A DNA stretch of 64,000 nucleotides, from assembly GCA_950097015.1 (NCBI GenBank), contig CATNEN010000034.1, forward strand, positions 2,480,001 through 2,544,000, given 5' to 3'. Numbering within the stretch: position 1 is the first letter of the stretch; each line of letters opens with the position of its first letter. Of this stretch, positions 68 to 58,980 are shown in pieces. The translations under genes were made by a program, and so were the position numbers. The DNA comes from Macrostomum hystrix. Lineage: Eukaryota > Animalia > Platyhelminthes. Below the pieces are notes generated by a model, which saw nothing but the letters and a program-made list of their open reading frames with translations, ran no database searches and had not been told where the DNA came from.

Positions 68-3000
68 CAGAAGGTCCAGATGGTAGCCAACGCCCTTTCG
101 CATTTTGTTCTCGCGTCTGTTGACAATGACGCTGGTGATCTGCTGGTCCAGGAACAGCAAAATCACCGCCAAGACGGCTGGACCCAGCGCGATGAGCGAT
201 GTGTACCAAGGATTGATACCGAAAGGATGCACCAGCCAGCCGCGGTAGGTGAAGCCGAGGGTTGGCTCAAAACTGGTCGGGATCAGCAGCTTTGGCGTGT
301 GCAGATCTACGGGTTGGAGGGCAGCGCTGGCCTGACACAATGCCCACTTCGAACTAACTTCGACCCCAATCTAAACCAGCTCAAAACCTCGCTATAAACC
401 AGCTCGACCCAGCTATAAACCAACTCGACCCAGCTATAAACCAGCTCGACCCAGCTATAAACCAGCTCGACCCAGCTATAAACCAGCTCAAAACCTTGCT
501 ATAAACCAGCTCGACCCAGCTATAAACCAGCTCAAAACCCAGCTATAAACCAGCTCAAAACCTAGCTATAAACCAGCTCGACCCAGCTATAAACCAGCTC
601 GACCCAGCTATAAACCAGCTCGACCCAGCTATAAACCAACTCGACCTAGCTATAAACCAGCTCGACCCAGCTATAAACCAGCTCGACCCAGCTATAAACC
701 AGCTCGACCCAGCTATAAACCAGCTCGACCCAGCTATAAACCAGCTCGACCCAGCTATAAACCAACTCGACCCAGCTATAAACCAGCTCGACCCAGCTAT
801 AAACCAACTCGACCCAGCTATAAACCAGCTCGACCCAGCTATAAACCAACTCGACCCAGCTATAAACCAGCTCGACCCAGCTATAAACCAGCTGAAAACC
901 TTTCTATAAACCAGCTCGACCCAGTTATATTTCTATAAACCAGCTCCACCTAGCTATAAACCAGCTCGACCCAGCTATAGACCAGCTCGACCCAGTTATA
1001 TTTCTATAAACCAGCTCGATCTAGCTATAAACCAGCTCGACCCAGCTATAAACCAGCTCAAAACCTTGCTATAAACCAGCACGACCCAGCTATAAACCAG
1101 CTCAAAACCTTGCTATAAACCAACTCGACCCAGCTATAAAACAGCTCGAAACCTTGCTATAAACCAGCACGACCCAGCTATAAACCAGCTCGACCCAGCT
1201 ATAAACCAGCTCGACCCAGCTATAAACCAGCACGACCCAGCTATAAAACAGCTCGAAACCTCGTTCTAAACCGACTTGACCCCTTAAATGACCCTTAATG
1301 ATCGCAAACCATTCACAAAAATTCTAAACCTGCATCTATTTGGCGACTCACCCAGAAGGAAGTCGACCAGCGTGACTAGGCAGATGGCGATCATGACGGC
1401 AAAGTCGGACATTAGGCGACGAACAAATGACGGAAACAGGCTGCCGTTGCGGGCCTTCTTAAGCGTGAAGCAAATGAAGAAGCTGGCCAAGAACAGCAGG
1501 CAGGAGATGAAGAACACGTCCGGCACGCTGAACAGGCCGCAGCCGCGCCCGATCCAGACGCCGCCGTATTCTGGGCAGGTCTTCCAGAACAGGTCGTGAT
1601 CCCACGAGTAATAGTCCATGGCGCTGAAGTTTGCCACGGTGACATTGCCAACAAGGTAGGTTGGCAGCTGGCGGGCCATCTTGGGCGGCACCGGCACCAG
1701 CTCGGTGAGGTTCTCGTTGGGGAAGCACTCGCACTCAACGATAACCTCCTGTTTGGGATGCCAGGCCCGATTCAACGGATAATCGGCTGAGATTTTGAAC
1801 AGCTTGGCGAATGACTCGTAGATGAAGATGACGGCGATGAGCAGGGCAAAGTTCTCCTCCGTAAATCGGGTGATGTATTTCACCAGGAAGCTGAGGTCCA
1901 ATGCTACTACGACTACTAGCAGAGCGGCAGTCCACATGCCGATCCACCAGCGGAAGGACAAGTAGTCCCAGTGGTATCGATCGCTCATTTTGAACACGAT
2001 AGATTCGAAAACCAACACCTGAACAGTTGAGCAGTTTTTAGTGCCTTTGGTCAATGTCTAACATCAATCAGTAGAAACCTCAATAAAACTCTTGTTGTAG
2101 GAGCTAACTACGAGAGAATCGATTCTTGGGGAGAGCTGAGATTTTGACAAGTCCAATACATTTCTAGCCAAAGCGTCTACACACTGCCAGTGTGTCTGCC
2201 CTGACTTTTAGTTTCAGATGTTGTACGCGCTGACTTTGCCTGGTATATTGGCATCATGGGCGTTAATGGCACGACAAGCCCTCAAGACTTCTCTCCGCGG
2301 AATCGAGCTCAGGGACGTTGGTGCGAGAATCGGACCGCTCTGCAACTCACTCTCTACATTGAACATTTCACATGAAGGCTTTCAACTAGAAATCCCATCT
2401 TGGTCATAGATCTATGGCGCATCTAAACATGTAAACACTCACCGGTCCCGTAGAACCAAGGATTGTCATTGGCTGTCCGGCGAACAAGGCGTAGGAAACG
2501 CCACAGATGAGGCCAGACAGGATGCTCTCCATGGCGCCCAGGTAGCCGTTGGTGGCATCGCTCAGCATGCCGCCGAAGGTGATGATTGGCGCGATGCAGG
2601 CGAAGTAGATGAAGAAGAATGAGCCAATGGTCTGCGGATGCAGTGCGTCCAGAAAGTCGCTCTTGTACCTGGCCGATTGCGGGAGAGGTGTCAATCTAGA
2701 ATCGAAACGTCACTCTAACCACCTGTCCATCAAGTCCCTCACTCACCAGGGCGCGCGCCTCTTGACATCGTCAATGAGGCCGCCGAACAGTCGGCCGGTG
2801 CGCTCGAGACCCTCAATGTGGCCGTGCTGCTCCGGCTCTGGCTCTTTTTCCGTCTTGTCGGCGTGTCGGTGCTCCGTGTTCGGCACATCAGCCGGTGGTG
2901 GAATGCGGTCGGTGAGGGAGCAGCCGATGGGAGGCAGGATGCTGGAGCACTTCAGGAACTCGTCCACGCCTGCCACCAGCTCCGCCTATCGTATCGTTTC

Positions 3001-8585: not shown

Positions 8586-11500
8586 TTAGTGCTCGTTGTC
8601 TCCAAGCAGATCCCGAAGGTTGTCCTCGCACAGCGCAATGAGGCACATTGCGCCAACGCCGACAGAGATGCCAGCGCTTTGCAGGGCAAAATGGGCCAGC
8701 CGAGATTCGCCAGGCTTCACGTGCACCAAATTGAGTTCGGGCAGCTGGCAGGGAGAGTGCGGTTGCGATTCGTTAGATAGATTGGCGAATGAAGCTATGA
8801 AAAGCGATGCACTTTGGTATTGTACGTCGTACTTTGGCATTCTTAGTTCATGTGGCTTATGGGAAGTATTTGATGCCTATGATTCGCCAAGTACGGCAAT
8901 GATACTGGCTGTGACTGCGATTTTCAATATGACTAACAACGCAGTGCCCACCATGTCAACAAGCGAAATGTACACAAAAATGCCTCCTGCCACGGCAAAG
9001 ATCCAGTAGCTGGCGCTGGTCGCGTTGCCGGCGCAGACGCCTACGGCGGCGCCTGCGGCTGCCATAGCCGAAGACACCGCGTTGCAGAGGAGCGCTCGGC
9101 GAGGAGGCATTCCCGTTTTGAGCAGCACCGCGAAGTCGCCTAGAAATTGTATGGAAAAAATCGATATCCGACTTAATTGAAAGCAGGATGAAGTGACAGT
9201 AGGATGAAGTGACAGTAGGATGAAGTGACAGTAGGATGAAGTGACAGTAGGATGAAGTGATAGTAGGATGAAGTGACAGTAGGATGAAGTGACAGTAGGA
9301 TGAAGTGACAGTAGGATGAAGTGACAGTAGGATGAAGTGACAGTAGGATGAAGTGACAGTAGGATGAAGTGACAGTAGGATGAAGTGATAGTAGGATGAA
9401 GTGACAGTAGGATGAAGTGACAGTAGGATGAAGTGACAGTAGGATGAAGTGACAGTAGGATGAAGTGACAGTAGGATGAAGTGATAGTAGGATGAAGTGA
9501 CAGTAGGATGAAGTGATAGTAGGATGAAGTGACAGTAGGATGAAGTGACAGTAGGATGAAGTGACAGCTGGATAAAGTGAGCTGCTTACCCAGCTCGTGC
9601 GGCAGCTCGTGGCACAGCACGGCCACGCTGGTGGAGGCGCCGCCCGCCAGGCTCTGAGCAAAGGCGGCACCGATCGCCAGGCCGTCGGCAAAGTTGTGCA
9701 ACCCGTCGCCGAGAATCACCATCCACGCCATGGAGGCCATGTGACCGCGACCTCCGTGACTGTGGCCGTGCGCGTGAATGTCAACTTCGAAATTGTCGCG
9801 TCTGTCTGTCCGGCTGTCAGCTTGGATGACATCGCTGAACGCGGCGACGCCATCGTGAACTCCACCGGCGCCGTTGGCCTCTGCGTCGGTTGGCTCGCTG
9901 GCTTCGTGCAGCTCGCACAGCTCCACGAGATTGCGAAAATTGTCAATGCTGCGGAGTGCTGTGCGGGAGGATCACGTTGTGCATTCGTGACCCGACTGCA
10001 TGGGTCACTGATTGGACACCTCACTGCATGGGTCACTGATTGGACACCTCACTGCATGGGTCACTGATTGGACACCTCACTGCATGGGTCACTGATTGGA
10101 CACCTCACTGCATGGGTCACTGATTGGACACCTCACTGCATGGGTCACTGATTGGACACCTCACTGCATGGGTCACTGATTGGACACCTCACTGCATGGG
10201 TCACTGATTGGACACCTCACTGCATGGGTCACTGATTGGACACCTCACTGCATGGGTCACTGATTGGACACCTCACTGCATGGGTCACTGATTGGACACC
10301 TCACTGCATGGGTCACTGATTGGACACCTCACTGCATGGGTCACTGATTGGACACCTCACTGCATGGGTCACTGATTGGACACCTCACTGCATGGGTCAC
10401 TGATTGGACACCTCACTGCATGGGTCACTGATTGGACACCTCACTGCATGGGCCACTGATTGGACCACTAAATCACGCAACGCAATGTGTGACGCAACCA
10501 GTGAATCATGTTAGAAGCAATGTTCCTGCTAGCCCTTTTATAAATGTGTTAACCATTTGATTTCTTAGAAATAATACCAGCTCACCATTGAGCCAGGGGC
10601 TACATAGTCAACTTTGAGGATGCGAAAGCAGTTGTGTTTATTAATTCCATTAGCCACTCTGGACGCATGAAGCAGCTTAAGATAATCCCAATCCTCTTTC
10701 CAAGTCACGTGTATGTCCGACCTAAATTCGCAATCAAAGAAAATTGCCAAGGGGATTATTGACTGTCCATCTATTTCTCGTCTGTCTTACTTCCTATCCG
10801 ACCGCATCTAATTTCGAGCAGCCAGTCTCCTCAAGCTCTTTGGCTAATTTACACTGATGCTTCTGTGTTCAACTGGCATTTCTCGAGACGAGATGCCATA
10901 GGAGCAGCTTATCCCTTTAAAAATACTTCCCATTACCGATAATTAATGAGTTTTCTTCATAGCAGCATTCCAGTCTCCAGAGAGGCGGAGAGAATTAAGT
11001 TTAGTTGGCACAGTTCGTAGCCTCTTTAGTTTGCAAGTTTACAATGCTACGAAGCTTAGAAGCTCACCCTTGCTGCCCAGGCCAGTGGTAATAATATCGT
11101 CACAGGACTTTTCGCCGTACATTCGAGAAACGCGACGCCGCTGCCGCTCCAGAGTTGCCAGACCGTCAGACGGATCGCTGGCCGGCTCCAAGTGCCGCTG
11201 CTCCTGGATTGGGAGGGAAGGGAAAAGGGATGGGTCACGATAGGGGAGTGAGGAACGTAGGAGAGGAGAGAGGAGACGAGGTGGGTGACGGGGTGCGGGG
11301 ATGGCAGTGAAGTGGGTGACGATGGGGGCACGGTGATGGGGAGGGGAGTGAGGTGGGTGACGATGGGGGCACGGTGATCGGGGAGGGGAGTGAGGTGGGT
11401 GACGATGGGGGCACGGTGATCGGGGAGGGGAGTGAGGTGGGTGACGATAGGGGCACGGTGTGCGGGAGGGGAGTGAGGTGGCTTATAATGGGTCCTACGG

Positions 11501-45130: not shown

Positions 45131-46705
45131 TCATACCAAGCGATGAGAAGGAGTGATCAGGAGAGAATAGCAGGCGACCAAAAGTCCAAAGAGGACGGCG
45201 GGTGTCGATGATCTCCCGGTCGAGGACTTCCTGTTGAAAGATTTCGCCGATGAAGCTGCAGCGGCGGATCCTGAGAGCTCCTCCGAGGTTGCGCCGCTGT
45301 GCTCATGCTCGTGCAGCCCGTGGTTGTCTTGGGCGTGCAGAGTGGCGCGGCTGATGCTGGCGCAGTTGGACTCCTGCAGGTATTCGCTCTCAGGATCGAA
45401 CCAACGACCGCACCGGCAGCTATACTGGGCGCCGAAGTGTCGCCAGCTGACGGACTCGTTCTTGGCCCGACCGGCGTCGTCCCACTTCCATTGGTCGCGG
45501 CACAGGCTGAGGGCGGCCATCTCGAAGTACTTGGCCTTGTGGGCGTGACCGAAACGCCAGCCGGACAGCAGGTGGCGCTCGAAGTCAGGCGGGCCGCTGC
45601 ACACGCCGATGATGGCCGCGGCGGTCACCTTCACCCGGGTGAAGTTATACATCTCGCAGCCGCACTGCAGCGGGTTGTCGTACAAGTCGACACTGCTGGA
45701 GTCCCAGCGGCAGGGGTCACTGGAGTCCACGGTGGGGTGGCCCAGGAAGGTCGGCCGGCCGATGCGGTTCTGGCGCAGATTCAGAGTCAGCGGTAGGCGC
45801 AGGCTGGAGAATGTGAAGTCGCCCAGAGTTTCAATCTCGTTGCTGCTGAAGTCCAGGTTTAGGCGGCCCCGACCGCTGAACGGAAAGCGAAGCCGGAGGA
45901 AGCTGACGGCGTCGAGCTCTTTGATGCGGTTGCGCGCCAGATGCAGCGCGTCAATCGTCAACAGCGGCGCCAGGAACTCCGCAGGCAGGCCGGTCAGCCC
46001 CATGCCGTTGAGCCGCAAGGTGCGGAGGCTGCTGGCCAGCGGCTGCATCAGGTTGGGATTTTCCATCACCGCTCCAGCCGGGTTGTCGCTGAGGTCGAGC
46101 ATCTCCACTCCTGGCGCGTCAGCAAACAAGTCCTCTGGCATGCGGCCGAGACGGTTGAAGGTCAGGTCCAGGCTGCGGAGGCTGCTCCCGGGGCCCTGCA
46201 GAGCGCCCCGCATGAATTCGCTGGCCCCGACATCTTTCAGCGACAGTTCAGCGAGGCCAACGAAGCCTGCCAGGTGATCGCCGGTTATCAAAGGCATCTT
46301 TGCCCTGGCCAGGTTCAGGACGCGAACCGAGGGCAGGAAGCGAGCGAACGCCCTGTCAGCGGAGAGCGCCAGTGTCTCATTAGAGTTGAGTCTGCTGCGG
46401 CTGCAGTCCAGTGTCAGACTGAGGTTGACTCGCTCGCACAATGGCGAGCCGCTTTTGCCTTCGCATGAGCCGAAGATGGCCACCTCACGGCAGGTCACGG
46501 AGCAGCGGCCGTTGGCGACTGCGCCCAGCTGGCTGGAGCCGTCGCAGGAGGTGGCCGCAGGCGTGCCAGCAGCAGCCGCACTGGAAGTTTCCACTGCGAG
46601 AGCCGCTGCCGGAAGCAGGAAGTGCACAATGACTGGGAGAGCTGACCAGAGTGACATTTGCGGCGTCGGGGAAGATGGCTGTGGGACGGCCGGGCAGGCA
46701 CTCAT
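45131..46705 (-). CDS. Intronless extracellular leucine-rich-repeat protein with signal peptide, LRRCT and probable GPI-anchor signal
   Basis: 524-aa ORF (likely start Met at 46657, MSLWSALPVIV); repeated LxxLxLxxNxL units; NPLQCGC...CSGP C-terminal cap; Ser-rich spacer then a terminal hydrophobic tail with almost no cytoplasmic domain. Confidence 0.88.
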   Translation of the reverse strand: MSACPAVPQPSSPTPQMSLWSALPVIVHFLLPAAALAVETSSAAAAGTPAATSCDGSSQLGAVANGRCSVTCREVAIFGSCEGKSGSPLCERVNLSLTLDCSRSRLNSNETLALSADRAFARFLPSVRVLNLARAKMPLITGDHLAGFVGLAELSLKDVGASEFMRGALQGPGSSLRSLDLTFNRLGRMPEDLFADAPGVEMLDLSDNPAGAVMENPNLMQPLASSLRTLRLNGMGLTGLPAEFLAPLLTIDALHLARNRIKELDAVSFLRLRFPFSGRGRLNLDFSSNEIETLGDFTFSSLRLPLTLNLRQNRIGRPTFLGHPTVDSSDPCRWDSSSVDLYDNPLQCGCEMYNFTRVKVTAAAIIGVCSGPPDFERHLLSGWRFGHAHKAKYFEMAALSLCRDQWKWDDAGRAKNESVSWRHFGAQYSCRCGRWFDPESEYLQESNCASISRATLHAQDNHGLHEHEHSGATSEELSGSAAAASSAKSFNRKSSTGRSSTPAVLFGLLVACYSLLITPSHRLV

Positions 46706-46985
46706 GGCACTCAGGCACTCATGGCTTAGGTATATCCCTCTAGTACTGACTCACAGGGGAAGAGACACACGCCTTCTTCGATTGGTTGAATTTCCCAACG
46801 GGGTCAAAAATGGATCAGCTAATGTGCGCACAGGGGGAACAGGATTCTTCGACTCTTCAGACACTACTGACTAGTAATGTTTCGATTTAAAAAAAGTAGC
46901 ACGTAGTTAAAAAGGAAAAGGAGAAATATTTTTAATTAACAGACTGATTTATTTGTGTTTGTTTACGAAAAAAAGTCAACATTCA

Positions 46986-47258
46986 GGGGGGTTAGTGGCG
47001 TCGCGGTGAACATGTTTGCCTCTCGCACCAAGATTCCTGAGCTCGATTCCGCGGCGAGGCCTGATGAATACCTATATTCATTTCGGGTGCAGCTGCGGAG
47101 AGAAGGCTTACGCCTTGAGGGCCAACCTCCACGGCACAGTGAGAGTGTACACTGCCTGACGATGAGAAAGTCAGGGCAGATGTACACACCTGTGGCTGCG
47201 GGTCTACTGTCACCAAATGGTCTGCCACTGCTCACAGTCCTTCTGCAATTGTTAATAA
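46986..47258 (+). mobile_element. SINE family A, internally deleted copy
   Basis: Head, hairpin core and tail recognisable; ends about 20 bp from the stop codon of paralogue 1. Confidence 0.88.
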
Positions 47259-47279
47259 CATAGGCGCAAGTACTATCAA

Positions 47280-48257
47280 CTACCAGGGGCAAAGTAGGTC
47301 CAGCTGCAGGAACTCTAGAGTGCTCAGAGCAGCTTTGGCGATCGCGTAGCAGATCATTCGACCCTTAAGCGTCGCATCCGCCTGCCTGTGAAATCCCAGT
47401 CTCAGGCAGCGGGGCTCAGAGCTCAATTGCCAGGCCATATCATTCTCAGCGGCAAGGTAGGATCCGTTTTTGTAGAAGTTGCTCAGAGTCTTGCCATTGA
47501 ACGCCGCGCCCAGCGAGACGGCCTGAGCTGTTCCGCCAAGAAGGAGCTGGTCCTGGCCGGATTGGCGCGTCTCAACGTTGTCAGGATAGCTAGCCAGGCT
47601 CAGAAACCGATGCTCTACCCACGCACGCCCATCGCGATCGCCGAACAGCCCTGATTGAGGCGAATAGCTCGTGCAGTCGTAGAAGAAGTGGTAGGTCGAC
47701 TGGTACATCGTTTGACGGACAACTTTGGCGAAGAATGAAAAGTTGCTCTGATAGTCGAGGAACTCCGACACCAAGGACCCGTTTCGAGTGTCCACCTCGA
47801 TGAAGTCGGAGATTGTGCCGGCAAAGTTCGCACCCTGCGCGTCCCTCGTGACCCTTCCGTGCGGCGTGGCGTCGAATGTGCCCGGATTGACGAGGTTGCT
47901 GAAGCTCTTCCTGAAATCGAACAGCACAACCAGCTTGGGCTTTACGTTGTTCCTGATGTGACTCAGGCACGGTCCTTGGATCGAAGAATTGTTTGAGGAA
48001 AACAGGTTTCTCAACTGGCGAGCAAAGTAGCAGGTGCTATTGGCGTGATACAGCACTGAACAACTGACGCTTTCTGCGCATGCCACAAAGCAGGTCCTCG
48101 GGTCCTGAACGCCTTCCAGCTTGCTGAGCTGCTGCAGACTGGCGTTGCTGCTGGGGCACAATGCAACCCGGCTAAACTTGACCTTGTATTCGAAAGCGCA
48201 TGCTAAGTTAACCGTATCTAAGCAGAACAAGGCGAAAAAACATAGCAGGTGCCTCAT
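47280..48257 (-). CDS. Secreted PAN/apple + LamG(ConA)-like protein, paralogue 1 (325 aa, intact)
   Basis: Signal peptide; CFVACAESVSCSVLYHANSTCYF fits PAN spacing C-x3-C-x5-C...C; C-terminal half LVVLFDF...GANFAG...NFSFFAKV...LRLG...LKGRMICYAIAKAALS resembles LamG_3/pentraxin pattern. Domain names are pattern-based inference. Confidence 0.82.
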   Translation of the reverse strand: MRHLLCFFALFCLDTVNLACAFEYKVKFSRVALCPSSNASLQQLSKLEGVQDPRTCFVACAESVSCSVLYHANSTCYFARQLRNLFSSNNSSIQGPCLSHIRNNVKPKLVVLFDFRKSFSNLVNPGTFDATPHGRVTRDAQGANFAGTISDFIEVDTRNGSLVSEFLDYQSNFSFFAKVVRQTMYQSTYHFFYDCTSYSPQSGLFGDRDGRAWVEHRFLSLASYPDNVETRQSGQDQLLLGGTAQAVSLGAAFNGKTLSNFYKNGSYLAAENDMAWQLSSEPRCLRLGFHRQADATLKGRMICYAIAKAALSTLEFLQLDLLCPW

Positions 48258-48705
48258 GCCTGCCTGGATACCTGCGTCTTAGTGTCAGCTAAAAATTGAT
48301 CATCGATAGCAAGATCAACCTAAATACCTCCCATGGTGATGGCTTGTTGCCATGGAGATCACAGATGCCTTATATTCAAGTGGGAGAATGGCTTTCTGGA
48401 CTCACAAGATTGAATCAAGTTCAATACACTTAATTTAGAACAATCAGAATGAGCACTGCTTAGTGTGCTCAAGTGCTTCTTATTGCGTTTCTGTAGTTCT
48501 GCAGTGTCTCTACAGTTCCTTTGTTTTATCTTTCAAGTTTCCTAATTGAACGCTTGAACAAAGGTTCTCGTATTAATGCGATCCGTCAGGGTACTCAAAA
48601 ACTGAACAATAAAAGCCTGTTTCAGAAAAGTTGCTAATTTTCTAGATAATCGAAAATGTAGTGCAGTTATTCTCAAAACATTCTCAATAAGATGCAATTC
48701 GGTTC

Positions 48706-48870
48706 GGTTCGATTCCGCAGCGAGGCCACATTCATTTGGGGCGCAGGCTTGGAGGTTGGTCGTGCAATTTACGCACTTGAGGGCCAACCTCCAAGTCACA
48801 GTGATGGTGTACACTGCCTGACGATGAGAAAGTCAGGGCAGATGTACACACCTGTGTGATTGTGTGCCTG
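48706..48870 (+). mobile_element. SINE family A, truncated at both ends
   Basis: From TTCGATTCCGC through the conserved hairpin to CCTGTGTG. Confidence 0.85.
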
Positions 48871-49576
48871 CTAAAAGTATCTTGGTGCATGTCAAAGTCC
48901 GCACGCCAATGATTACCAAAAACAATCGGCCAGAGACAGTTAGCACTTGAAAGCCCTCACTGAAAATGTCATTCCCTCATGTTGTCAAGTCATCCTTCCA
49001 CTATGTTAGGCTCGGTGGATCAATAGACCACTTCTGTGGAACTGTGAATACCCAACAATCGATAGAAACAGGAGAGGCTTCTAGTTCCACTATTTGATTA
49101 TTAAAATGATGATTAAATTTTTTCAGCTTAATACTTCAGGACTCGACTCGAATTCTGTAACTGTAGAAACCCACGGGGTATTTCAACCACTCACATCTTT
49201 CTTTCTTCCAGAATCACGAAACATCACCATGTAACCATGTGGCCTATTGTCGCTGAATATATTTTAATTGGTTATTGGTCTTGGACAAGAATCGTTGAAC
49301 ATCTCGACGATGCTGCCGTCCGACGGCTTTGAAAGTCAGTTCATCGTAAATGGCGGAAAATTTTGATTCTAGTGGTGGACTTTCACGAAAATCGGTCATT
49401 AGGTTTGGGAGCTGTCGTGAAGCAGGCAGTGGGTACTTGAAATACACCTTGAAAGACAATACATGTCTTTCTAAATACAGATATAATATATGTCTTTCTT
49501 CACGGGGGAAAATCACGTCGTTTTTCTACTGCTAACTGATTGACTGAACTCTAGTTTAAAAAATAATTGCAAAGAA

Positions 49577-50538
49577 TCAGCCACACATGCGATCCAGCTG
49601 CTGAAACTCCACCGTGCTCAGTGCCGCTTTGGCGATGGCGTAGCAGATCATCAGACCCGCGAACCTTGTCTCCATCGTTATAGCCCAGCCTCAGACAACT
49701 CGGTGAGTCCTCCATGCCATTATTTTCTATATCATCGAACCCTTTGCCAAATCCGTTAAAGGAAGAAGTTATTCAGGGAGTCTCCATTGAACACTGCGCC
49801 AAAGGAGTACATTTGAGTGCCCGGCAGCTGGGATGAACTACTTATCAGCCTTTTGTACAGCCTCACACCATCAGTGAGAAATCGGTGGCGAACCATCAGC
49901 CGGCGTGAACGCAGACCCAGAACGCCCGCTTCCTTTCTTGAGCCGCAGTAATATATTATAGAAGCGATGGAAGTTGGCTGAATCTTTAGGAACCGGGTAG
50001 GCCTTCACATAGAATGAAAAGTTTCTTGGCTTCTCTAAAATTTTAAAATCAGAGCACCACTCTGCGTGTCCACCTCAATGAAGTCGGCTTGGCTGCTTCC
50101 AGGAAAGTGAGCACCCAGATGATCCCTCCTGATCGCTCCGTTAGGCGTGGCATCGAAGGTTCCAGGACTGACGAGGTTGCTGAAGCTCTTTCTGAAGTCG
50201 AAGAGCACAACCAGCTTGGACCTCACGTCCTGTCTCACGTGACTCTCGCACGGCTCCGAGCTCTGCGCCTCGGTCTGGTTAAAGAGGCCGGCCAGCTGGA
50301 TCGAGTCGCCGAAGTAGCAGATGTTGTTTGAGCGATGCAGCACTGAGCAGCTGATGTTGGCCGCGCAGGCGGTGAAGCAGGCGCCGCTGTCCTGTGAGCC
50401 GGCGAGCCAGCTGAGCTGCCAGAGGCTCGCGTTGCTGGGGCACCCCGGCCGCTTCAAGAAGGTGATGTTCTGCTCCAGAATGGTGATCTGGGCCGCCTCA
50501 GCGCAGTTGCAAAGCCACATCAGAACGAGTAAGAGCAT
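49577..50538 (-). pseudogene. PAN + LamG-like paralogue 2, four frameshifts
   Basis: Intact N-terminal half (ATG 50538); homologous C-terminus recoverable to ...MICYAIAKAALSTVEFQQLDRMCG* (stop 49579-49577) only with a 1-nt deletion (~50037-50040), a 7-nt insertion (49951-49957), a 1-nt insertion (~49758) and a further frameshift (~49660-49670). Confidence 0.8.
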
Positions 50539-51206
50539 TGTCACAGAGATGGCTCTCAAAAGTTGTTTTTAGCGAAGCTGTTGTTAAATTCTCGTTTATG
50601 CGCCCACAGCTTGCACAGCAGATAGCTTAAGTATCTGCTAGTTACACTTGCTAAAAAACCAATGAGAGCCTATTTGGTTGCCATGCTGACCTAGCAACAA
50701 GTTTCTTCATCTTCTTTCTGCCTACGGAGGGTAGAAATAAGCGTTTTTAGAGCTAGTTAGTGAAACAGCCACAGTCAACCTGCTTTAGCGCCTGCCAACT
50801 CACAGACGCATCGGTTTCTGTAATACATCCATCACCTCTCTCGGCGTGGTAGCTTTCTCAAATTCTCAAAGACTAGAAAATTATAGACAGCATTTCATGC
50901 TTATTTAAGTGCTTCTTCAGAAAACATCGACTCATCAGTTTTTCCTGACAGGTCACAGCATTGTTTGACTTCTAGCTGATATGATACTGAGTTAAAGTTC
51001 TTTTTATACTAGAAGGAAAGGAAGAAGGCGAACAAAGGAGAATTCGGCACTGGGAGACCCAACTGATGTCGCGTAGAAGGAGACATTGCTGCATGATTTA
51101 GTTTTTTTACAAACTGCATGTGCTGTACGATATGTGATGCAATTATGCAATTGATGTATGGTCATCAGCGTGGGCCGGGTGAGGGGTCAACGCGTTTTCG
51201 TCTCTT

Positions 51207-51579
51207 ATAATAATAATAATAATAATAATTGCAGGAGGGCTGCGGGCAATGGCACATCATTTGGTGACACTTGACCCGCAGCCAGCGAGGAGGCAATTCT
51301 GCCCATTCTGCTGACTCCTGAGCACACACGAACACAGATACTGTACGCAGGCACAGTCTCACACAGGTGTGTACATCTGCTCTGACTTTCTCATCGTCAG
51401 GCAGTGTACACTTTCACTGTGCCTTGGAGGTTGGCCCTCGAAGGCGTAAATTGCACGACAAGCCACCAAGCCTTCTCTCCGCGGCAGCGCCCCAAATGAA
51501 TGTGGCCTCGCCGTGGAATCGAACTTAGGGACCTTGGTGCGAGAGACAAACTCGTTAACCGCTCTGCCACCGACCCCCC
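51207..51579 (-). mobile_element. SINE family A, full-length, with 13-bp TSD
   Basis: (TTA)n tail; flanks GTTTTCGTCTCTT (51194-51206) and GTTTTTGTCTCTT (51580-51592), 12/13 identical. Confidence 0.92.
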
Positions 51580-52139
51580 GTTTTTGTCTCTTGCATCACG
51601 GCCCCTGAGCACGATACCACGGCGACGCCACATTGTCTTCGTTTGGCTTTTCGTGAAATTTACATCCGTGAGGATCAAACTCGAGGGTACAGATCCGTGT
51701 GCGTGTGCGTTCAGAAGCCAGGGGAATGGGACAATGGCCTCTCGCTGGCTGCGTGTCACCCGTCACCAAATGATTTTCCAGTTCCCATATCCCTCTTAAA
51801 AAAAAGTAAACTTTTTTTATATTATCAGTATCCATTTGCAGGAGTGAAGCGAGGCACAAAGGCCTGAATAAAAAATTCTTTAAATTCTGATAAAATGGTC
51901 TGAAAGAGCCGAAGCTGGTATTCAAACATGCATTGAACTTCAGTGTCAGTCATACATTGGATTGTAATCCAAGCTGCACTTTCTAGGCTAAAATAACTAG
52001 AGAGAAAGATGATATTATTTTTTGTGTATTGTTGTGGACATAATCAGCACACTGCGATCCAGATCGCAATTTGAATGAGTACAGGTGCTCATTCCAAGCA
52101 GTCGGTCAGCAATCCTTCATCGCCAAACGCTACGCAATA

Positions 52140-53288
52140 TTAGTTATTGCAAAGCTCGTCCAGCTGTTGAAAATCCTCCGAGCTCAGAGCGACCTTGGCG
52201 ATCGCGTAGCACAACATGCGACCCTTCAGTGGTCGATCGCTTTCGGAATCGAAGCCAAGACGCAGGCACCGAGGCTGTGCGTTCAGGGTATAACGGAGGT
52301 CCACGTCCATCAGCAAGTCCGAGCCGTTCAGCCAGAAGCGACTGAGGCTCTTGCCCACGAATGCGGCTCCCAGTGATGCGGCTTGCGCCTTGTTCGCCAG
52401 CAAGAACGGCTCGCTGCTGGACTGTCGTGTCTCGATGGTTTCCGTCCAGTCTGTCAGGCTCGGGAACTGGTGCTCGACCCAAGCCCTTCCGTCGCGATCT
52501 CCAAACCGTCCAGCGTTTAGCACAGAGCTACAGTCGTAGAAGTAGTGATAAGTTTGCTGATAGTAGGTTTGTCTGAAAACCTTGGCAAAGAAGGAGAAGT
52601 TCTGACGGCTTTCCAGGTAGTTGGACACAAGAGATCCATTGTTAGTTTGCACTTCAATGTAGTCAGAGCAGCAGGCGCCAGAGAAATGCGCGCCCTGAGA
52701 ATTCCTGAAGACCGAGCCGAATGATTGGGAGTCGAATTCTCCGGGGTTGGCGAGGTTCGCGAAGCTCCGCCTGAAATCAAAGAAAACCACCAACTTGGCC
52801 ATTATTGCAGGAATCGGCGGGAACGCTTTTGTCGAAGCGGTTGTCGCAGCAGTCGGAGTGGCTGGACCCGTGGGGTCTTGGGGTTGAGCGGTCGATCCGG
52901 CAGTTGCATTCCTATTCAGGCTTATTCGATACAAAGTTAGAGCAGTTAGAGGACTCTTGGCGTAGCTGCAGCACGCTGCCGAGCTGCGGGCTTCCGACTG
53001 AGACAGCAGAGCTTCAAGCTGGGTTTCATCGCCAATGTAACATTCTCCAGTACTGCCGCAATGCGTCACTGAGCAGTTTAGTCGGATAGCGCATCGAGAT
53101 AGAGCCTGAGCTCGGCTCATGACTCCCGGCAGCGTAGTCCATTGGGTCAAGTCCTGGCTACTCGGACAAAGCGACACTTTTTCAAATGTTTGCTCGGACA
53201 CAATAGCATCTGCTGAGTTGAAACAGAGTGAAATTAAAACAGCGAATGCAAGCTTGCGCAGGTGATTCATATTCAAGCAGTGTCTCAT
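52140..53288 (-). CDS. PAN + LamG-like paralogue 3 (intact) with a Thr/Pro/Ala-rich linker
   Basis: Open to ...LKGRMLCYAIAKVALSSEDFQQLDELCNN*; ATG at 53288 or 53270 precedes the signal peptide. Confidence 0.82.
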   Translation of the reverse strand: MRHCLNMNHLRKLAFAVLISLCFNSADAIVSEQTFEKVSLCPSSQDLTQWTTLPGVMSRAQALSRCAIRLNCSVTHCGSTGECYIGDETQLEALLSQSEARSSAACCSYAKSPLTALTLYRISLNRNATAGSTAQPQDPTGPATPTAATTASTKAFPPIPAIMAKLVVFFDFRRSFANLANPGEFDSQSFGSVFRNSQGAHFSGACCSDYIEVQTNNGSLVSNYLESRQNFSFFAKVFRQTYYQQTYHYFYDCSSVLNAGRFGDRDGRAWVEHQFPSLTDWTETIETRQSSSEPFLLANKAQAASLGAAFVGKSLSRFWLNGSDLLMDVDLRYTLNAQPRCLRLGFDSESDRPLKGRMLCYAIAKVALSSEDFQQLDELCNN

Positions 53289-53889
53289 TGTGCCTGACAA
53301 AATTGATTCTCGATGCAGCAGTTTCACCACTATTTATCACTCAGTGTTCTGCGTTTGCTCGACTTACTACCAAAAACTGAAGTACGCCGTCAAAAGCATG
53401 AATTCTTTGCTAGTCAACAATTGAATTCTAGGTTGCGGCTGGCAGGGAGCCACCTGTTATTGCATGTTAGTCTTTGTGGCAGGCCCTCAGCTACACTTGA
53501 GTAATTGTTAGTAGGAAAGTTTTAGACTTTTCAAGGTATTGATGATTTGTCAAGCCTCCACGCTTTTCATTCTTTGAAGCTGGGGTTTTCCATTTGAATG
53601 GTCTCGTAGCTCATGCTCAACAGCTTGTCGAGATTCGAAAGAAGCTAGGAGCGGCTTAGGAGCACGATTTTGGCGAGATGCTTTGGCATTCATCAATTCT
53701 CTCACAGAACATAATTTCAGTAAGCTGTGTACTTTAGAAATCTACGAGCTATGTTAATATGATATACGCATATGAATATTGCGTAAATAAGATTTTTGGC
53801 CATAGACAAAAAGTCTGGTAGAAAAATCTGACTTAAAAGAAATGCAAAAAACCTGTCTTTTTCTGCCGCTTTTGGTCTCCATTCGGTCG

Positions 53890-55440
53890 AATTTGGTCAC
53901 TTTCCGTTTATTTCGTCACTTTCAGTCTAATTTGGCCACATTCGGTCTAAGCTGGTCCCTTTCGATCTTATTTTGTCCCTTTCCGTCTAATTTAGGCACT
54001 TTCGGTTTAATTTGGTCACTTTCCGTCTAAATTGGTCACTTTCCGTTCATTTCGTCACTTTCAGTGTAATTTGGTCATTTTCGGTCTAATTTAGTCATTT
54101 TCAGTCGAATTTGGTCATTTTAAGTCTAACTTGGTCACTTTCCATCTAAATTTTTCCACTTCTGGCTAATTTAGTCATTTTCAGTCAAATTTGGTCACTT
54201 TCGGTCTAATTTGATCATTTTCGGTCTTATTTTGTCACTTTCCGTCTCATCTGGTCACTTTCCGTTAGGGGTGTTCGGGTTCCATTTTTTCCGCCTTTCG
54301 ACCGCCTAATGTCTGCATAAAATATACATAAATTATAATCTAAGGCTAAAAGCAGGGCTAAGGCTAGAGCTAATATGCTAGAAAAATAAACCGCTAAAAA
54401 ACGTTAATGAATGGATGACAGTAAACGAACCTGCTATATAGAGAATAGATTATCATTAATATGATTTGCTCTGTTTAGTAAAGTCTACAAGTTCTCTGTT
54501 AGCCTGGATGTGGGATTACCTACTTAACTAGCTGGCTAGATAAAAAAAATAAATAATTAAATACATAAGACATAATGCAGTTTAGACTTCAGATATATAG
54601 ATCATTCCTTTCACTATGGAATATTATAATGCAGGGCCGAAAATTCATAGAATGATATATTTACGTTAGAATGATTACTGGATCACGATTATTAAGTCCT
54701 TCCTTAGTGCAGTGCATTATGCGTACGCCAGTTTAGTTCACGAGGTAATTTTTTTAATTGGCGCGATTCTGAAAGACGCTTTATCACATTGCCTAAGGCA
54801 ATACTAATTAATTAATACTGAAATAATATATAAAAATCCGGAAACCCCGAACCCGGTGCCAAAACCCGACCCGGAAACCCGAACCCGAACACCCTACCCC
54901 GAACCCCGAACCCGGTACCAAAACCTGAACCGAAACCCGACCCGACCCCGAACCCCGAACACCCCTACTTTCGGTCTAATTTGGTCACTTTTCGTATAGT
55001 TTGGTCATTTTCAGACTATTTGGTCACTTTCGGTCTTATTTTGTCCCTTTCCGTCTAATTTAGGCACTTTCGGTCTAAATAGGTCATATTTGGTCTAATT
55101 TGGCCACTTTTCGTCTAGTTTGGTCATTTTCAGACTATTTGGTCACTTTCGGTCTTATTTTGTCCCTTTCCGTCTAATTTAGGCACTTTCGGTCTAAATT
55201 GGTCACTTTCCGTCTAAATTGGTCACTTTCCGTCTAAATTGGTCACTTTCCGTCTAATTTGGTCACTTTCCGTCAAATTTGGTCACTTTCCGTCTTATTC
55301 GGTCATTTTCACCCTAAATTGTTCACATTCCGTCTAATTTAGCCACCTTCGGTTTATTCAGTATTTTTGCTCACCCTTTAACTCACCTTTTTGGCTCACC
55401 TTCACTAAAAAAGGTCACTTTCGGTCTACATCGTTAGATA
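53890..55440. repeat. 20-bp satellite (TTGGTCACTTTCCGTCTAAA variants), interrupted by a MITE
   Basis: Period 20 clear at 55201-55260; the same unit occurs on both sides of the insertion. Confidence 0.9.
54266..54967. mobile_element. Non-autonomous hAT-type DNA transposon (MITE), 702 bp
   Basis: Perfect 14-bp TIRs TAGGGGTGTTCGGG (54266-54279) / CCCGAACACCCCTA (54954-54967); 8-bp TSD CTTTCCGT / CTTTCGGT (7/8); subterminal CCCGAA repeats at 54840-54960; no ORF. Confidence 0.85.
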
Positions 55441-56429
55441 AGCTAAATAAGTGGAAGAAAGTGTCACATCTCGTCACACCAGTGTCACACCATTGCACTA
55501 GTCTGGACCTGCATACTACTTTCAGTAGAGTAGTAAATACCAGCCGAAGATACATAATGAGTTGCTGCAACAAAGCTATATAAATTTATTTGCATAGCTT
55601 TTTACTAATGTTCCTGGAATTCTGCCTCGGATGAAAACATCAACCTCGAGTATGAGGCGCCTGTTTATTGAAGTCTAAACAGTTCTAACAAACTTAAAAA
55701 CAATTGCTGGACTGTCTGCATACAACAAAAATATTGAACTGCAGAAAACGTATTTTTTAACTTTCCGAATTCAACGCGATGAAGCTTAACTTGTAGAAAA
55801 CAGCAATACTTATCGAATTAGCCGCTTAAATTTTCAACAATACCAAAAACGAGGAAGTTCATTAAAAATTTTCAATTTTGCGTCTTGAAATTAGGAAACT
55901 TTCTTAAACTATCTTTAAGCACAGCTCACTGGCTAAAACATGCTTGAGCTAATATAAATAATAGACCTGGTCTAACCCAGTCCCTGCAGCTAGCTAACAA
56001 CAATTAGAGTCACTTCTCATGCAGTCAGTCAGTCAGCGAGGAAATCGTGATGGAAAAGGTGCTTTGAAGAGACTTAAAAGAGCGAATCCACCACACTGGA
56101 ACCTGTTCCTCGCTTCTCTGGGAATAAGAAACTAACTCAACCGCCCTCTTGACAAAGGGAAAATATTAGTGTGGGAGGTGTGCAGTGCGGACTTCCCGGA
56201 GGACAAAACAATAGAAGAAGTTTCTCGCTTCGCTGGAAGACAAGACTTCGCCACGCCTAACTCTATCGATCGGTCAAGTCTATGAGTTGTTCCTGGCTTG
56301 GAGAAAAAGCATCAATTGTGATCGGAATCACCAAAGAATTTTGATTCTTCAAGCAGGCAAAGTTTTTCCTGCTCTTGTGAGTCGTCCCAAAGACTTATAG
56401 CCTAAGCATGAAGCAATGCGACAACTTAA

Positions 56430-56788
56430 GGGGGCTGAGTGGCAGAGCGGACAAAGCGTTTGCCTCTCGCACCAAGGTCCCTGAGCTCGATTCCGAGGCG
56501 AGGCCACATTCATTTGGGGCGCAGCCGCGGAGAGAAGGCTTGGGGCTTGTCGTGCAATTTACGCCCTTGAGGACCAACCTCCAAGGCACAGTGAAAGTGT
56601 ACACTGCCTGACGATGAGAAAGTCAGAGCAGATGTACACACCTGTGTGAGACTGTGCCTGCGTACAGTATCTGTGTTCGTGTGTGCTCAGGAGTCAGCGA
56701 AATGGGCAGAATTGCCTCCTCGCTGGCTGCGGGTCAAGTGTCACCAAATAATGTGCCATTGCCCGCAGCCCTCCAGCTTATATTATTT
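56430..56788 (+). mobile_element. SINE family A, full-length, with perfect 13-bp TSD
   Basis: TGCGACAACTTAA at 56417-56429 and 56789-56801. Confidence 0.93.
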
Positions 56789-58000
56789 TGCGACAACTTA
56801 AAACCTAAAGGAGGCCCACATAGGGTAATACTATATTTACCTGGCAAAAAAGTCTCCACAAACGAGTTAACGCTTAAGTGTCTATCAATGACACTTTGTA
56901 ACGAACCTCCTCCTAGACGGTTGCCAACTGGGATGAGAGACCAACACCAAAAGAGGCCGAATTTTCCCACGATGGTCATAGCAGGCTAAAAATTATCAAT
57001 TTCAATTTTCTGTTCTTATAAATAGGAAAAAACCTGTCTTTGTCCTATCTCTTTAGTGCACTTTTCTCGCAGTCAGAGCTCAGTTCTTTAATTCTTCGTC
57101 TATGGCCATAAACTAAAAATTGACAACTTTACTGCTTGGGGTATGTTGCTGTAGTAGTGCTTCGATAGTTAAATCGTGAGGCAGTACAGAGTCGTGAAGC
57201 GAAACTACGCCGTCGGCGGGAGACATCGGAGGAGCGTAAAATGTATTATTTATAAAGTCGTCAATTAAAATTTACATTTTTAATGTTTCTTAAAATACTA
57301 AACTTGGTTAGCTGCTACAAAATATGTTTTATTGACTAAATGAATACTTTTTCATTGTCTTCTAGTTTAAGGTCCCCAAAGGGGGCACGAATTGCTAGTT
57401 AACATACTATAACTGATATTGCCAATTTTTGCTGTGAAAATGAAACACTGATAATGCTGCTTCTGATTGGATTCTATTAGAGCGTAAAAATAAGACTCGA
57501 TCGATAGTTAGATTTCACTTATAGTTTCAAAATTGAATAATCATTGAATAATCATACAAAAGTCATTGTATTAGATGGAAATTTTAACATGGAAATTCCG
57601 GGGTACTTTAACATACTTTAACATTAAGTTTTATTTAAAAGCTAAAACGAACCGCACACATATTGTAGTACAGTTCGGCACACAATAGTATTACCCAGTT
57701 GATGAATTTGACAAGGAAACTATTTCACAACGGACCAGAGAAAAAAATGTTAACTTTTTACTTTTTACTGTTAACTCAAAGGATTGCTGAAGATTATTTC
57801 ATTTGCGCTCAAGAAATATGTTTTCCTGACTGTTGTTAGTCAGCTAATCTACTGTTATTTGACTTCTTTAGAAAAATATTGAATAAAAGTATTTATCTTT
57901 CTTCTCGCAAGATTTATTACTCTATAAGCTGAACTCTAAACAGTAGTTCTAAACTCAAATCGTGTACTCCGTGTCTTCTCGGACTCAGAATTGCGCGCCT

Positions 58001-58980
58001 CTACCACGGGCACAGCTTATCCAGCTGTTGGAACTCAGCAGTGCTCAGCGCAGCCTTGGCGATGGCATAGCAGACCATGCGGCCCTTGAGTAGCCTGGTT
58101 GAGTCGGTGTGGAATCCAAGTCGCAGGCATCGGGGAGCCTCGTAGGGCCCCCAGCGCTGATCAGCCTCAGTAGGCCAGCTCAGATCCGTTCAGGTAGAAG
58201 TTGCTCAGGGAAGTGCCTCTGAACACATGCTCCAAGAGAGATGGCCAGCGGAGAGTTGGATGGCAGGACTTGGGCGGACTGGCGAGTCTCTGCTAGGTCC
58301 GGGTAAGTCGACACACTCAGAAACTGGTGCTCAACCCAGGCTCGCCCGTCACGATCTCCAAAGGGCATTACTTTCGGCGAACTTTCCATGGGACATTTAA
58401 AGAAGGCGTGGTAGCTAGACTGGTACTTTTGCTCCCTCACCACCTTGGCGTAGAAGGAGAAGCTGTTCGGGCTGTCCAGGTAAGTCGAGATCAAGGATCC
58501 GCTCCGTGTGTCCACTTCAATGTAGTCATTGTTGGAAATGCCGGGAAAGTTGGCTCCCTGGGCGTCCCTAGTAACGGCTCCATGAGGTGTGGCGTCGTAG
58601 GTGCCAGGACTGGCCAGATTGTTGAAGCCCTGCCTGAAGTCGAACAGCACTACAAGCTTGGATCTGGCGTCTTTGGTGTGGCTAACGCACGGATCAGCAT
58701 TCGGCGAGACGGTCAGAGTGAAGAGGGCGGCCTGCTGCTCGCTGGTGCCAAAGTAGCAGGTGACACCTGTGCGGTACATCACGTTACAGTTAGAATTAGT
58801 AGCGCAGTCTACAAAGCAGGTCCGGCGATCGTTGGCGCCCTCCAGCTTGACCAGCTGGTTCAGTTTGTCAGTGGCCGGACACACCGCCAGCTGGTTGAAG
58901 CTGGTGCTTTGAGTCAGGGTGGCAGCGCCAAAAGCTATGCAGTAGCTGAGGCACAGCGCGAGCACAGTTGCATTGAACAT
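58001..58980 (-). pseudogene. PAN + LamG-like paralogue 4, two +1 frameshifts (recent pseudogene or assembly indels)
   Basis: Removing single bases at ~58227 and ~58175 gives 978 nt, the same length as paralogue 1, ending LKGRMVCYAIAKAALSTAEFQQLDKLCPW*. Confidence 0.75.

Follow-up and report, generated by a model that had tools for sequence, protein, structure and literature searches.

In a 64,000-nucleotide stretch of the Macrostomum hystrix genome (assembly GCA_950097015.1, contig CATNEN010000034.1, positions 2,480,001 to 2,544,000 of the forward strand; hereafter the window), a tandem array of four paralogous genes, P1 to P4, occupies positions 47280-58980. Its intact members encode small proteins with an N-terminal PAN/apple-like module (N-module) followed by a ConA-like jelly roll of the Laminin_G_3 type (C-domain). 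With moderate confidence, we propose that these are two-domain secreted proteins with a non-catalytic function in extracellular binding, through lectin-like or adhesive recognition, and that the locus is an old local tandem array holding two working and two dead genes.

Array layout and domain anatomy

The four reading frames are co-oriented, all on the minus strand. The initial annotation had described four co-oriented intronless genes; four paralogues are indeed found at these positions, but two of the four (P2 and P4) are broken, leaving P1 and P3 as the intact copies. The features of the array are as follows, in window coordinates.

47280..48257, minus strand: P1 gene, intact and intronless, a single open reading frame (ORF) of 325 aa, stop included
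48195..48257, minus strand: putative signal peptide of P1, aa 1-21, a hydrophobic N-terminus with a small-residue cleavage-like site
47949..48191, minus strand: PAN/apple-like module of P1, aa 23-103, with Cys 34, 56, 60, 66, 76 and 97
47283..47948, minus strand: Laminin_G_3-type ConA-like jelly roll of P1, aa 104-325, with Cys 195, 284, 303 and 323 and a helix at the end
about 49577-50538, minus strand: P2 pseudogene, with the signal, the PAN module and the first ~60 C-domain residues in frame
52140..53288, minus strand: P3 gene, intact and intronless, a single ORF of 382 aa with the ATG at 53288 and the stop at 52140
52950..53201, minus strand: PAN-like module of P3 with an altered Cys pattern, the second Cys lost and two extra Cys present
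52818..52949, minus strand: Thr/Pro/Ser/Ala-rich linker between the domains of P3; the inter-domain gap in the alignment is 58 aa, 60% T/P/S/A
52143..52817, minus strand: ConA-like/LamG_3-type domain of P3
58001..58980, minus strand: P4, read as a young pseudogene with two 1-nt insertions after an ORF of 266 aa

The start of P3 reads MRH and matches the start of P1. The reading frame of P2 extends over 167 aa from its ATG (174 aa from an upstream TTG). Beyond this frame, the similarity to P1 can be followed only across at least four frame changes and several in-frame stops, and the block GDRDGRAWVEH is unrecognisable; P2 is a decayed pseudogene. In P4, alignment with P1 and P3 places the single-base insertions near 58227 and 58179, neither of them within a homopolymer run. 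The two frame shifts leave the last ~55 codons, including the most conserved motif of the family, out of frame, and we read P4 as a young pseudogene. An assembly error was considered as the source of these frame shifts and is unlikely: the insertions lie 48 nt apart outside homopolymers, and two errors so close together would be unusual in an assembly with a Merqury quality value (QV) of 42.8 (PMC10468722). In agreement with the initial annotation, P1, P3 and P4 have the blocks GDRDGRAWVEH[RQ]F and ETRQS in identical form. The block LKGRM.CYAIAK, also listed there as shared, is present in the P4 sequence but out of frame with the P4 start.

A total of 34 homologous single ORFs were collected from the M. 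hystrix genome, and the 32 full-length ones make up the family alignment (A1). The AlphaFold2 (AF2) model of P1 from this alignment has a mean predicted local distance difference test (pLDDT) score of 89.4 and a predicted template modelling (pTM) score of 0.78. Structure prediction and Foldseek comparison of P1 recovered both of the folds that had been read from the sequence alone, PAN and ConA-like.

The C-domain (residues 104-325, 222 aa), with pLDDT mostly above 90, is modelled as a two-sheet beta-sandwich ending in a helix. VIA-align superposes it on domain 4 of AbnA (5hon, arabinan-binding) with Z 18.1 at 3.0 A over 182 residues, and on the lectin-like HCN jelly roll of the tetanus and botulinum neurotoxin binding regions with Z 16-17. 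Foldseek returns the LamG domain of PAPP-A, the lectin domain of trans-sialidase and a carbohydrate-binding module of family 40 (CBM40) at E ~1e-6 and probability 1.00. The C-domain profile also reaches the clostridial neurotoxin jelly roll at E 1e-3; the fold similarity to the neurotoxin domain is generic and serves as a structural comparison only.

At the sequence level, Laminin_G_3 (PF13385) is matched by 14 of the 32 members at E < 0.1 (best 1e-7). One member, L032, passes the cut-off of 27.6 bits with a score of 32.6, and others reach 19-25 bits. The Pfam scan of the window proteins gave no Laminin_G_3 match, and membership of P1 and P3 would be transitive, via the family alignment. The typical Laminin_G_3 signature (G..x.C/D.....ALS..E...L) is recognisable in the last strand and the helix, with Cys replacing the usual Asp. 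A C-terminal Cys is invariant and accompanies the last-strand Cys; this conserved pair likely forms a closing disulfide. The initial annotation had called the domain LamG-like and referred to LamG/pentraxin folds. The LamG assignment stands on the fold and on the Laminin_G_3 matches, but the pentraxin signature H-x-C-x-S/T-W-x-S/T is absent from 32/32 members, with no Pfam pentraxin match.

The family shares its jelly roll with known members of the Laminin_G_3/ConA-like clan (AbnA domain 4, PAPP-A, trans-sialidase and HCN; Z 16-18 over 180-205 residues) at an identity of 8-18%, and is set apart from them by the Cys in place of the last-strand Asp and by the invariant C-terminal Cys. The context is also different. 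In this family the jelly roll stands behind a PAN module in a small, putatively secreted protein, whereas the clan members named sit in large enzyme, toxin or matrix proteins.

The N-module holds six Cys in P1, P2 and P4, with an apple-like spacing. Over the 32 aligned members, two of the Cys columns are invariant and the others are conserved at 90% or above, except for the first, where an adjacent Pro and not the Cys is listed at that level. A common signal peptide, six-Cys module and beta-rich domain of ~220 aa had been ascribed to all four copies; this is correct in general, but the Cys pattern of P3 departs from it. Modelled alone, the N-module has an AF2 pLDDT of 86. Its fold superposes on PAN/apple modules with VIA Z 7-7.8 at 2.4-3 A over ~70 of 81 residues, the best match having Z 7.8 at 2.4 A over 71/81 residues. 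Z values of this size are called common by the tool, and the Foldseek E values are just 0.08-1. The case for a PAN fold is made because the match list is exclusively of PAN type (the top 47 rows of the VIA list are all PAN, apple, MANEC or WSC modules) and is joined by sequence matches. Against solved PAN domains, the family profile of the N-module gives E values from 9e-5 (a fungal copper oxidase) to 0.005, with 0.004 for the apple domains of TgMIC4. PAN_1 is matched by 15 of the 32 members at E < 0.1 (best 6.7e-5), and among ten members scanned singly the PAN_1 scores reach 19-20 bits, below the gathering cut-off of 21.4. P1 scores 14.7 bits on PAN_3 (cut-off 21.1), and P3 has no PAN match. 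The PAN/apple assignment of the initial annotation is therefore upheld by family profile, Pfam matches and fold. For P1 and P3 themselves the domain assignment rests on fold and family profile, because both proteins stay below every Pfam threshold.

The same small alpha/beta fold, with one helix packed against a central antiparallel sheet, is found in the PAN/apple modules of the plasminogen/HGF N-domain, factor XI, TgMIC4, SML-2 and the leech anti-platelet protein, and the PAN modules of plant S-receptor kinases and fungal copper-radical oxidases likewise have the fold of the family N-module. The window proteins differ from these known modules in falling below the Pfam thresholds, and P3 in its rearranged Cys set.

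Every copy opens with a short hydrophobic segment, and nothing resembling a membrane span follows it (the maximum 19-residue Kyte-Doolittle value, KD19, is 1.31 in P1), and secretion is predicted because of this combination. The copies also carry several N-glycosylation sequons. The linkers between the two domains range from 10 to 223 residues among the 32 members, with up to 84% T/P/S/A. P1 and P4 have essentially no linker, and that of P3 is 58 residues long. The Thr/Pro-rich linkers are probably O-glycosylated. A long linker was observed in a 535-aa member of the family (L005, G000:C14:1050038-1053697), in which ~220 residues of TTTPTTA-type Thr/Pro repeats form a mucin-like stalk; in the tree this member is the orthologue of the UniParc entry UPI0007A151EB.

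Family range and age of the array

Searched in six frames with the C-domain profile, the genome gave 112 matches. About 35 of them cover the whole domain in one open frame, and other loci match in two pieces. The family in M. hystrix thus comprises ~35 intact intronless copies together with intron-split relatives of the same layout, and its largest clusters are on contig C1 at 26.40-26.46 Mb and 25.156-25.169 Mb. In three more distant relatives, L038-L040 (G000:C9:1621500-1624600, C2:9321500-9324300 and C3:11286800-11289600), the PAN-like and jelly-roll parts are in separate frames, and short gaps with changes of frame break up the coding sequence, leaving two or three segments. These gaps look like introns, which would make the three loci intron-bearing relatives with the same layout; intronlessness is therefore taken as a trait of one subfamily and not as a sign of foreign origin. 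Relatives of this type form tandem clusters on C3, C9 and C2. PAN modules without this jelly roll were also observed: at least 11 of them at G000:C1:12455581-12489000 match the N-module profile with E values of 1e-10 to 1e-13, and in this cluster a PAN head of the same kind seems to be combined with different partners.

An exhaustive profile search over 1.84 billion representative proteins returned 702 matches at E <= 1e-3. Among the full-length two-domain matches that were looked up, every one with a taxon name is from Macrostomum lignano; two top matches have UniParc identifiers only, without a taxon name. The M. lignano proteins UniRef100_A0A267DNP4 (PAA50913.1), A0A267E973 (PAA58135.1) and A0A1I8H603 belong to the same family and have the same two-domain layout. 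Full-length profile E values of such relatives range from 1e-87 to 1e-24 over profile positions of about 1-335, and UPI0007A151EB, an entry without a taxon name, is 46% identical to P1. The M. lignano members are already in UniProt and NCBI, unstudied and automatically named as 'Apple domain-containing protein' or 'Lectin_legB domain-containing protein'. Clear orthologue pairs with M. lignano exist for sister subfamilies, and none of the representatives in the tree falls inside the window clade.

One other two-domain match, P0034, is encoded on a JGI metagenome contig of 1.3 kb and is 26% identical to P1 over a stretch that takes in the PAN module and the beginning of the jelly roll; used as a query against metagenome contigs, it found no relative. 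Weaker matches cover one domain only, for example in multi-LamG_3 proteins from Saccoglossus and Lingula, in ConA-like proteins from bacteria, and in PAN-repeat proteins from protists and environmental eukaryotes. No protein of a parasitic flatworm or planarian was among the matches looked up. Word-index protein searches, one with P1 and one with the full alignment as query, were both blank; these results have little weight, and in the second case words from Thr/Pro linkers probably swamped the candidates. The ESM Atlas gave sub-threshold leads only (0.88-0.89), to giant-virus PAN_1 clusters and Laminin_G_3 clusters, which are not used as evidence. From these searches, the family as such appears to be confined to Macrostomum. 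Searches of the literature on PAN, apple, LamG and lectin proteins of Macrostomum and on six M. lignano gene identifiers found no paper on the family. The initial annotation had not recognized the architecture as a named family, and the automatic names of the public relatives agree with that.

In a maximum-likelihood tree of the C-domain, which left out the broken P2, P1, P3 and that part of P4 which is in frame group together as a single clade, with a Shimodaira-Hasegawa-like approximate likelihood ratio test (SH-aLRT) value of 99. The array therefore arose by local duplication. Synonymous sites between the window copies are saturated, with a proportion of synonymous differences (pS) of 0.65-0.85 in pairwise comparison and 0.6-0.9 along the whole gene. 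The C-domains of the window paralogues are 60-62% identical. In three orthologue pairs of M. hystrix and M. lignano, which belong to sister subfamilies, the identity is 67-68% in the C-domain and 58-73% in the N-module. The duplications in the window are judged about as old as the split of the two species, or older, because the identity between paralogues is slightly below that between orthologues.

The N-module has diverged strongly, as was noted from the sequence at first: P1 and P3 are 38% identical in this module vs 60% in the C-domain. The nonsynonymous divergence (dN) between window paralogues is likewise 0.53-0.80 in the N-module and 0.26-0.43 in the C-domain. The ratio of dN to synonymous divergence (dS) in the C-domain is roughly 0.15-0.18, and the intact copies are under purifying selection. 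The protein sequence of the GDRDGRAWVEH block is identical between copies, yet the third position differs in nearly every codon. Gene conversion, considered as the cause of the invariant block, was rejected for the array on account of these synonymous differences; the block is held by selection.

A further broken copy, similar to P1 in sequence (57% identity), was found on another contig, at G000:C32:1415040-1418705 (L004). It carries several stops and frame breaks and is a third pseudogene, related to the window clade. The birth-and-death process suggested in the initial annotation is supported: two of the four copies in an old single clade are dead, and the broken copy on C32 fits the same pattern.

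Surrounding sequence

The spacers of the array contain an interspersed repeat of ~370 nt with a tRNA-like head (T-arm-like GGTTCGATTCC), which is probably a short interspersed nuclear element (SINE). ARAGORN calls no tRNA gene in the repeat head. Four copies of the repeat were located.

46982..47260, plus strand: SINE-like repeat copy a, directly 3' of P1 and abutting its stop codon
48707..48892, plus strand: SINE-like repeat copy b, 5'-truncated
51220..51580, minus strand: SINE-like repeat copy c, 96% identical to copy d over 244 nt
56426..56790, plus strand: SINE-like repeat copy d

Two tandem arrays of a 20-nt repeat lie between P3 and P4, at 53882-54262 and 54967-55346, each with ~19 copies at 75-77% match, and an AACCCG-type microsatellite at 54863-54960 separates them. 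Adjoining the gene array, at 45131-46705 on the minus strand, is an intronless ORF of 524 aa that probably encodes a membrane-anchored leucine-rich repeat protein: its start is signal-like, its leucine-rich repeats (LRR_8, 6e-18) are flanked by Cys, and a hydrophobic segment lies at the C-terminus. Elsewhere in the window, the ORF at 1284-2054 (minus strand) matches positions 88-291 of the 551 of the HCO3_cotransp model, and that at 8877-9926 (minus strand) matches positions 143-229 of the 323 of the Zip model. Both look like exons of intron-containing transporter genes. Genes of M. hystrix have a mean of 5 introns (PMC10468722), and the first impression that most genes of the window have introns is consistent with this mean and with the partial Pfam matches of isolated window ORFs.

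Proposed role and alternatives

As proteins of extracellular recognition, the members of the array would act through each of their parts. Of the two domains, the jelly roll would be the likelier to bind a glycan or a protein, because its nearest structural neighbours are carbohydrate- or receptor-binding modules. The PAN module may provide a second surface for binding or oligomerisation, and the mucin-like linker, where present, may be a glycosylated spacer. Such recognition would take place at the body surface or in mucus or secretions, or would serve innate defence.

Several points weigh against this proposal. The extracellular binding role is deduced from sequence and fold, and proteins with the same fold need not have the same function: the ligands of LamG_3 and PAN scaffolds are very diverse, and some of these scaffolds have a purely structural role. 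Taken alone, P1 and P3 are below the Pfam thresholds for both domains. The signal peptide and the disulfides are predicted features, and the dN/dS values are rough because dS is saturated.

Among the other explanations, the one that survives best, though we hold it to be unlikely, is that they serve as bulk structural or matrix material, for example in mucus, rhabdites, egg shell or glue, with their domains cross-linking what is secreted. Many members have Thr/Pro-rich mucin-like linkers, the copy number of the family is high, and the matrix-binding PAN-fold proteins leech anti-platelet protein and saratin are among the fold and sequence matches. However, P1 and P4 are essentially without a linker, and the proteins are small, two-domain and free of repeats, with no compositional bias of the glue or shell type.

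Somewhat less probable again is a reproductive function, in which the proteins would act in seminal fluid or in gamete recognition in a hermaphrodite subject to sexual conflict. The birth-and-death turnover, with half of the copies dead, and the higher dN of the N-module between window paralogues would suit such a role. In the three orthologue pairs between the two species, however, the N-module is not the faster part (58-73% vs 67-68% identity), and no family member is named in the literature searched.

A role as secreted defensive or predatory toxin-like proteins, with the jelly roll binding the target, is very improbable. The one point in its favour is the C-domain fold, with its weak profile similarity to clostridial neurotoxin HCN, but this fold is generically ConA-like (8-13% identity), the score of AbnA domain 4, a non-toxin module, is no lower, and the proteins have no catalytic, pore-forming or translocation part.

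Two remaining explanations fit the data poorly, and we give both of them hardly any credence. The ConA-like domain could be an enzyme, a glycoside hydrolase or trans-glycosylase, given that its clan includes enzymes of the glycoside hydrolase family 16 (GH16) type and that Foldseek lists sialidase and arabinanase entries; but the matched parts of those entries are non-catalytic lectin- or CBM-like domains, the GH16 catalytic motif E-x-D-x-x-E is absent from 32/32 members, and the Pfam link is to Laminin_G_3. The whole array could also be non-functional, a set of retrocopy relics that keep their frames open by chance, in keeping with intronless genes, two broken copies of four and SINE-like repeats in the spacers; but P1 and P3 are still open despite saturated synonymous sites, with dN/dS ~0.15, ~35 copies of the family are intact, and sister subfamilies have conserved orthologues in M. 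lignano.

Extracellular binding by a secreted two-domain protein is accordingly the reading that we retain. The pairing of divergent PAN and LamG_3 folds in a small secreted protein, in dozens of genes and seen in Macrostomum only, is undescribed in the literature searched. Each of the two domains is a divergent version of a well-known binding fold. The family breaks no rule and opens no long-standing question. A broader idea, which we regard as doubtful, is that the PAN-LamG family and other PAN-headed expanded secreted families of Macrostomum together make up a lineage-specific, diversified recognition repertoire. If true, such a repertoire might serve innate immune pattern recognition, or mate or gamete recognition in the setting of traumatic or reciprocal insemination, and the birth and death of genes and the divergence of the N-module would tune its specificity. 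Macrostomum serves as a model in the study of regeneration, bioadhesion and sexual conflict, and the family is a reasonable candidate set for the surface, mucus, immune or reproductive biology of these worms.

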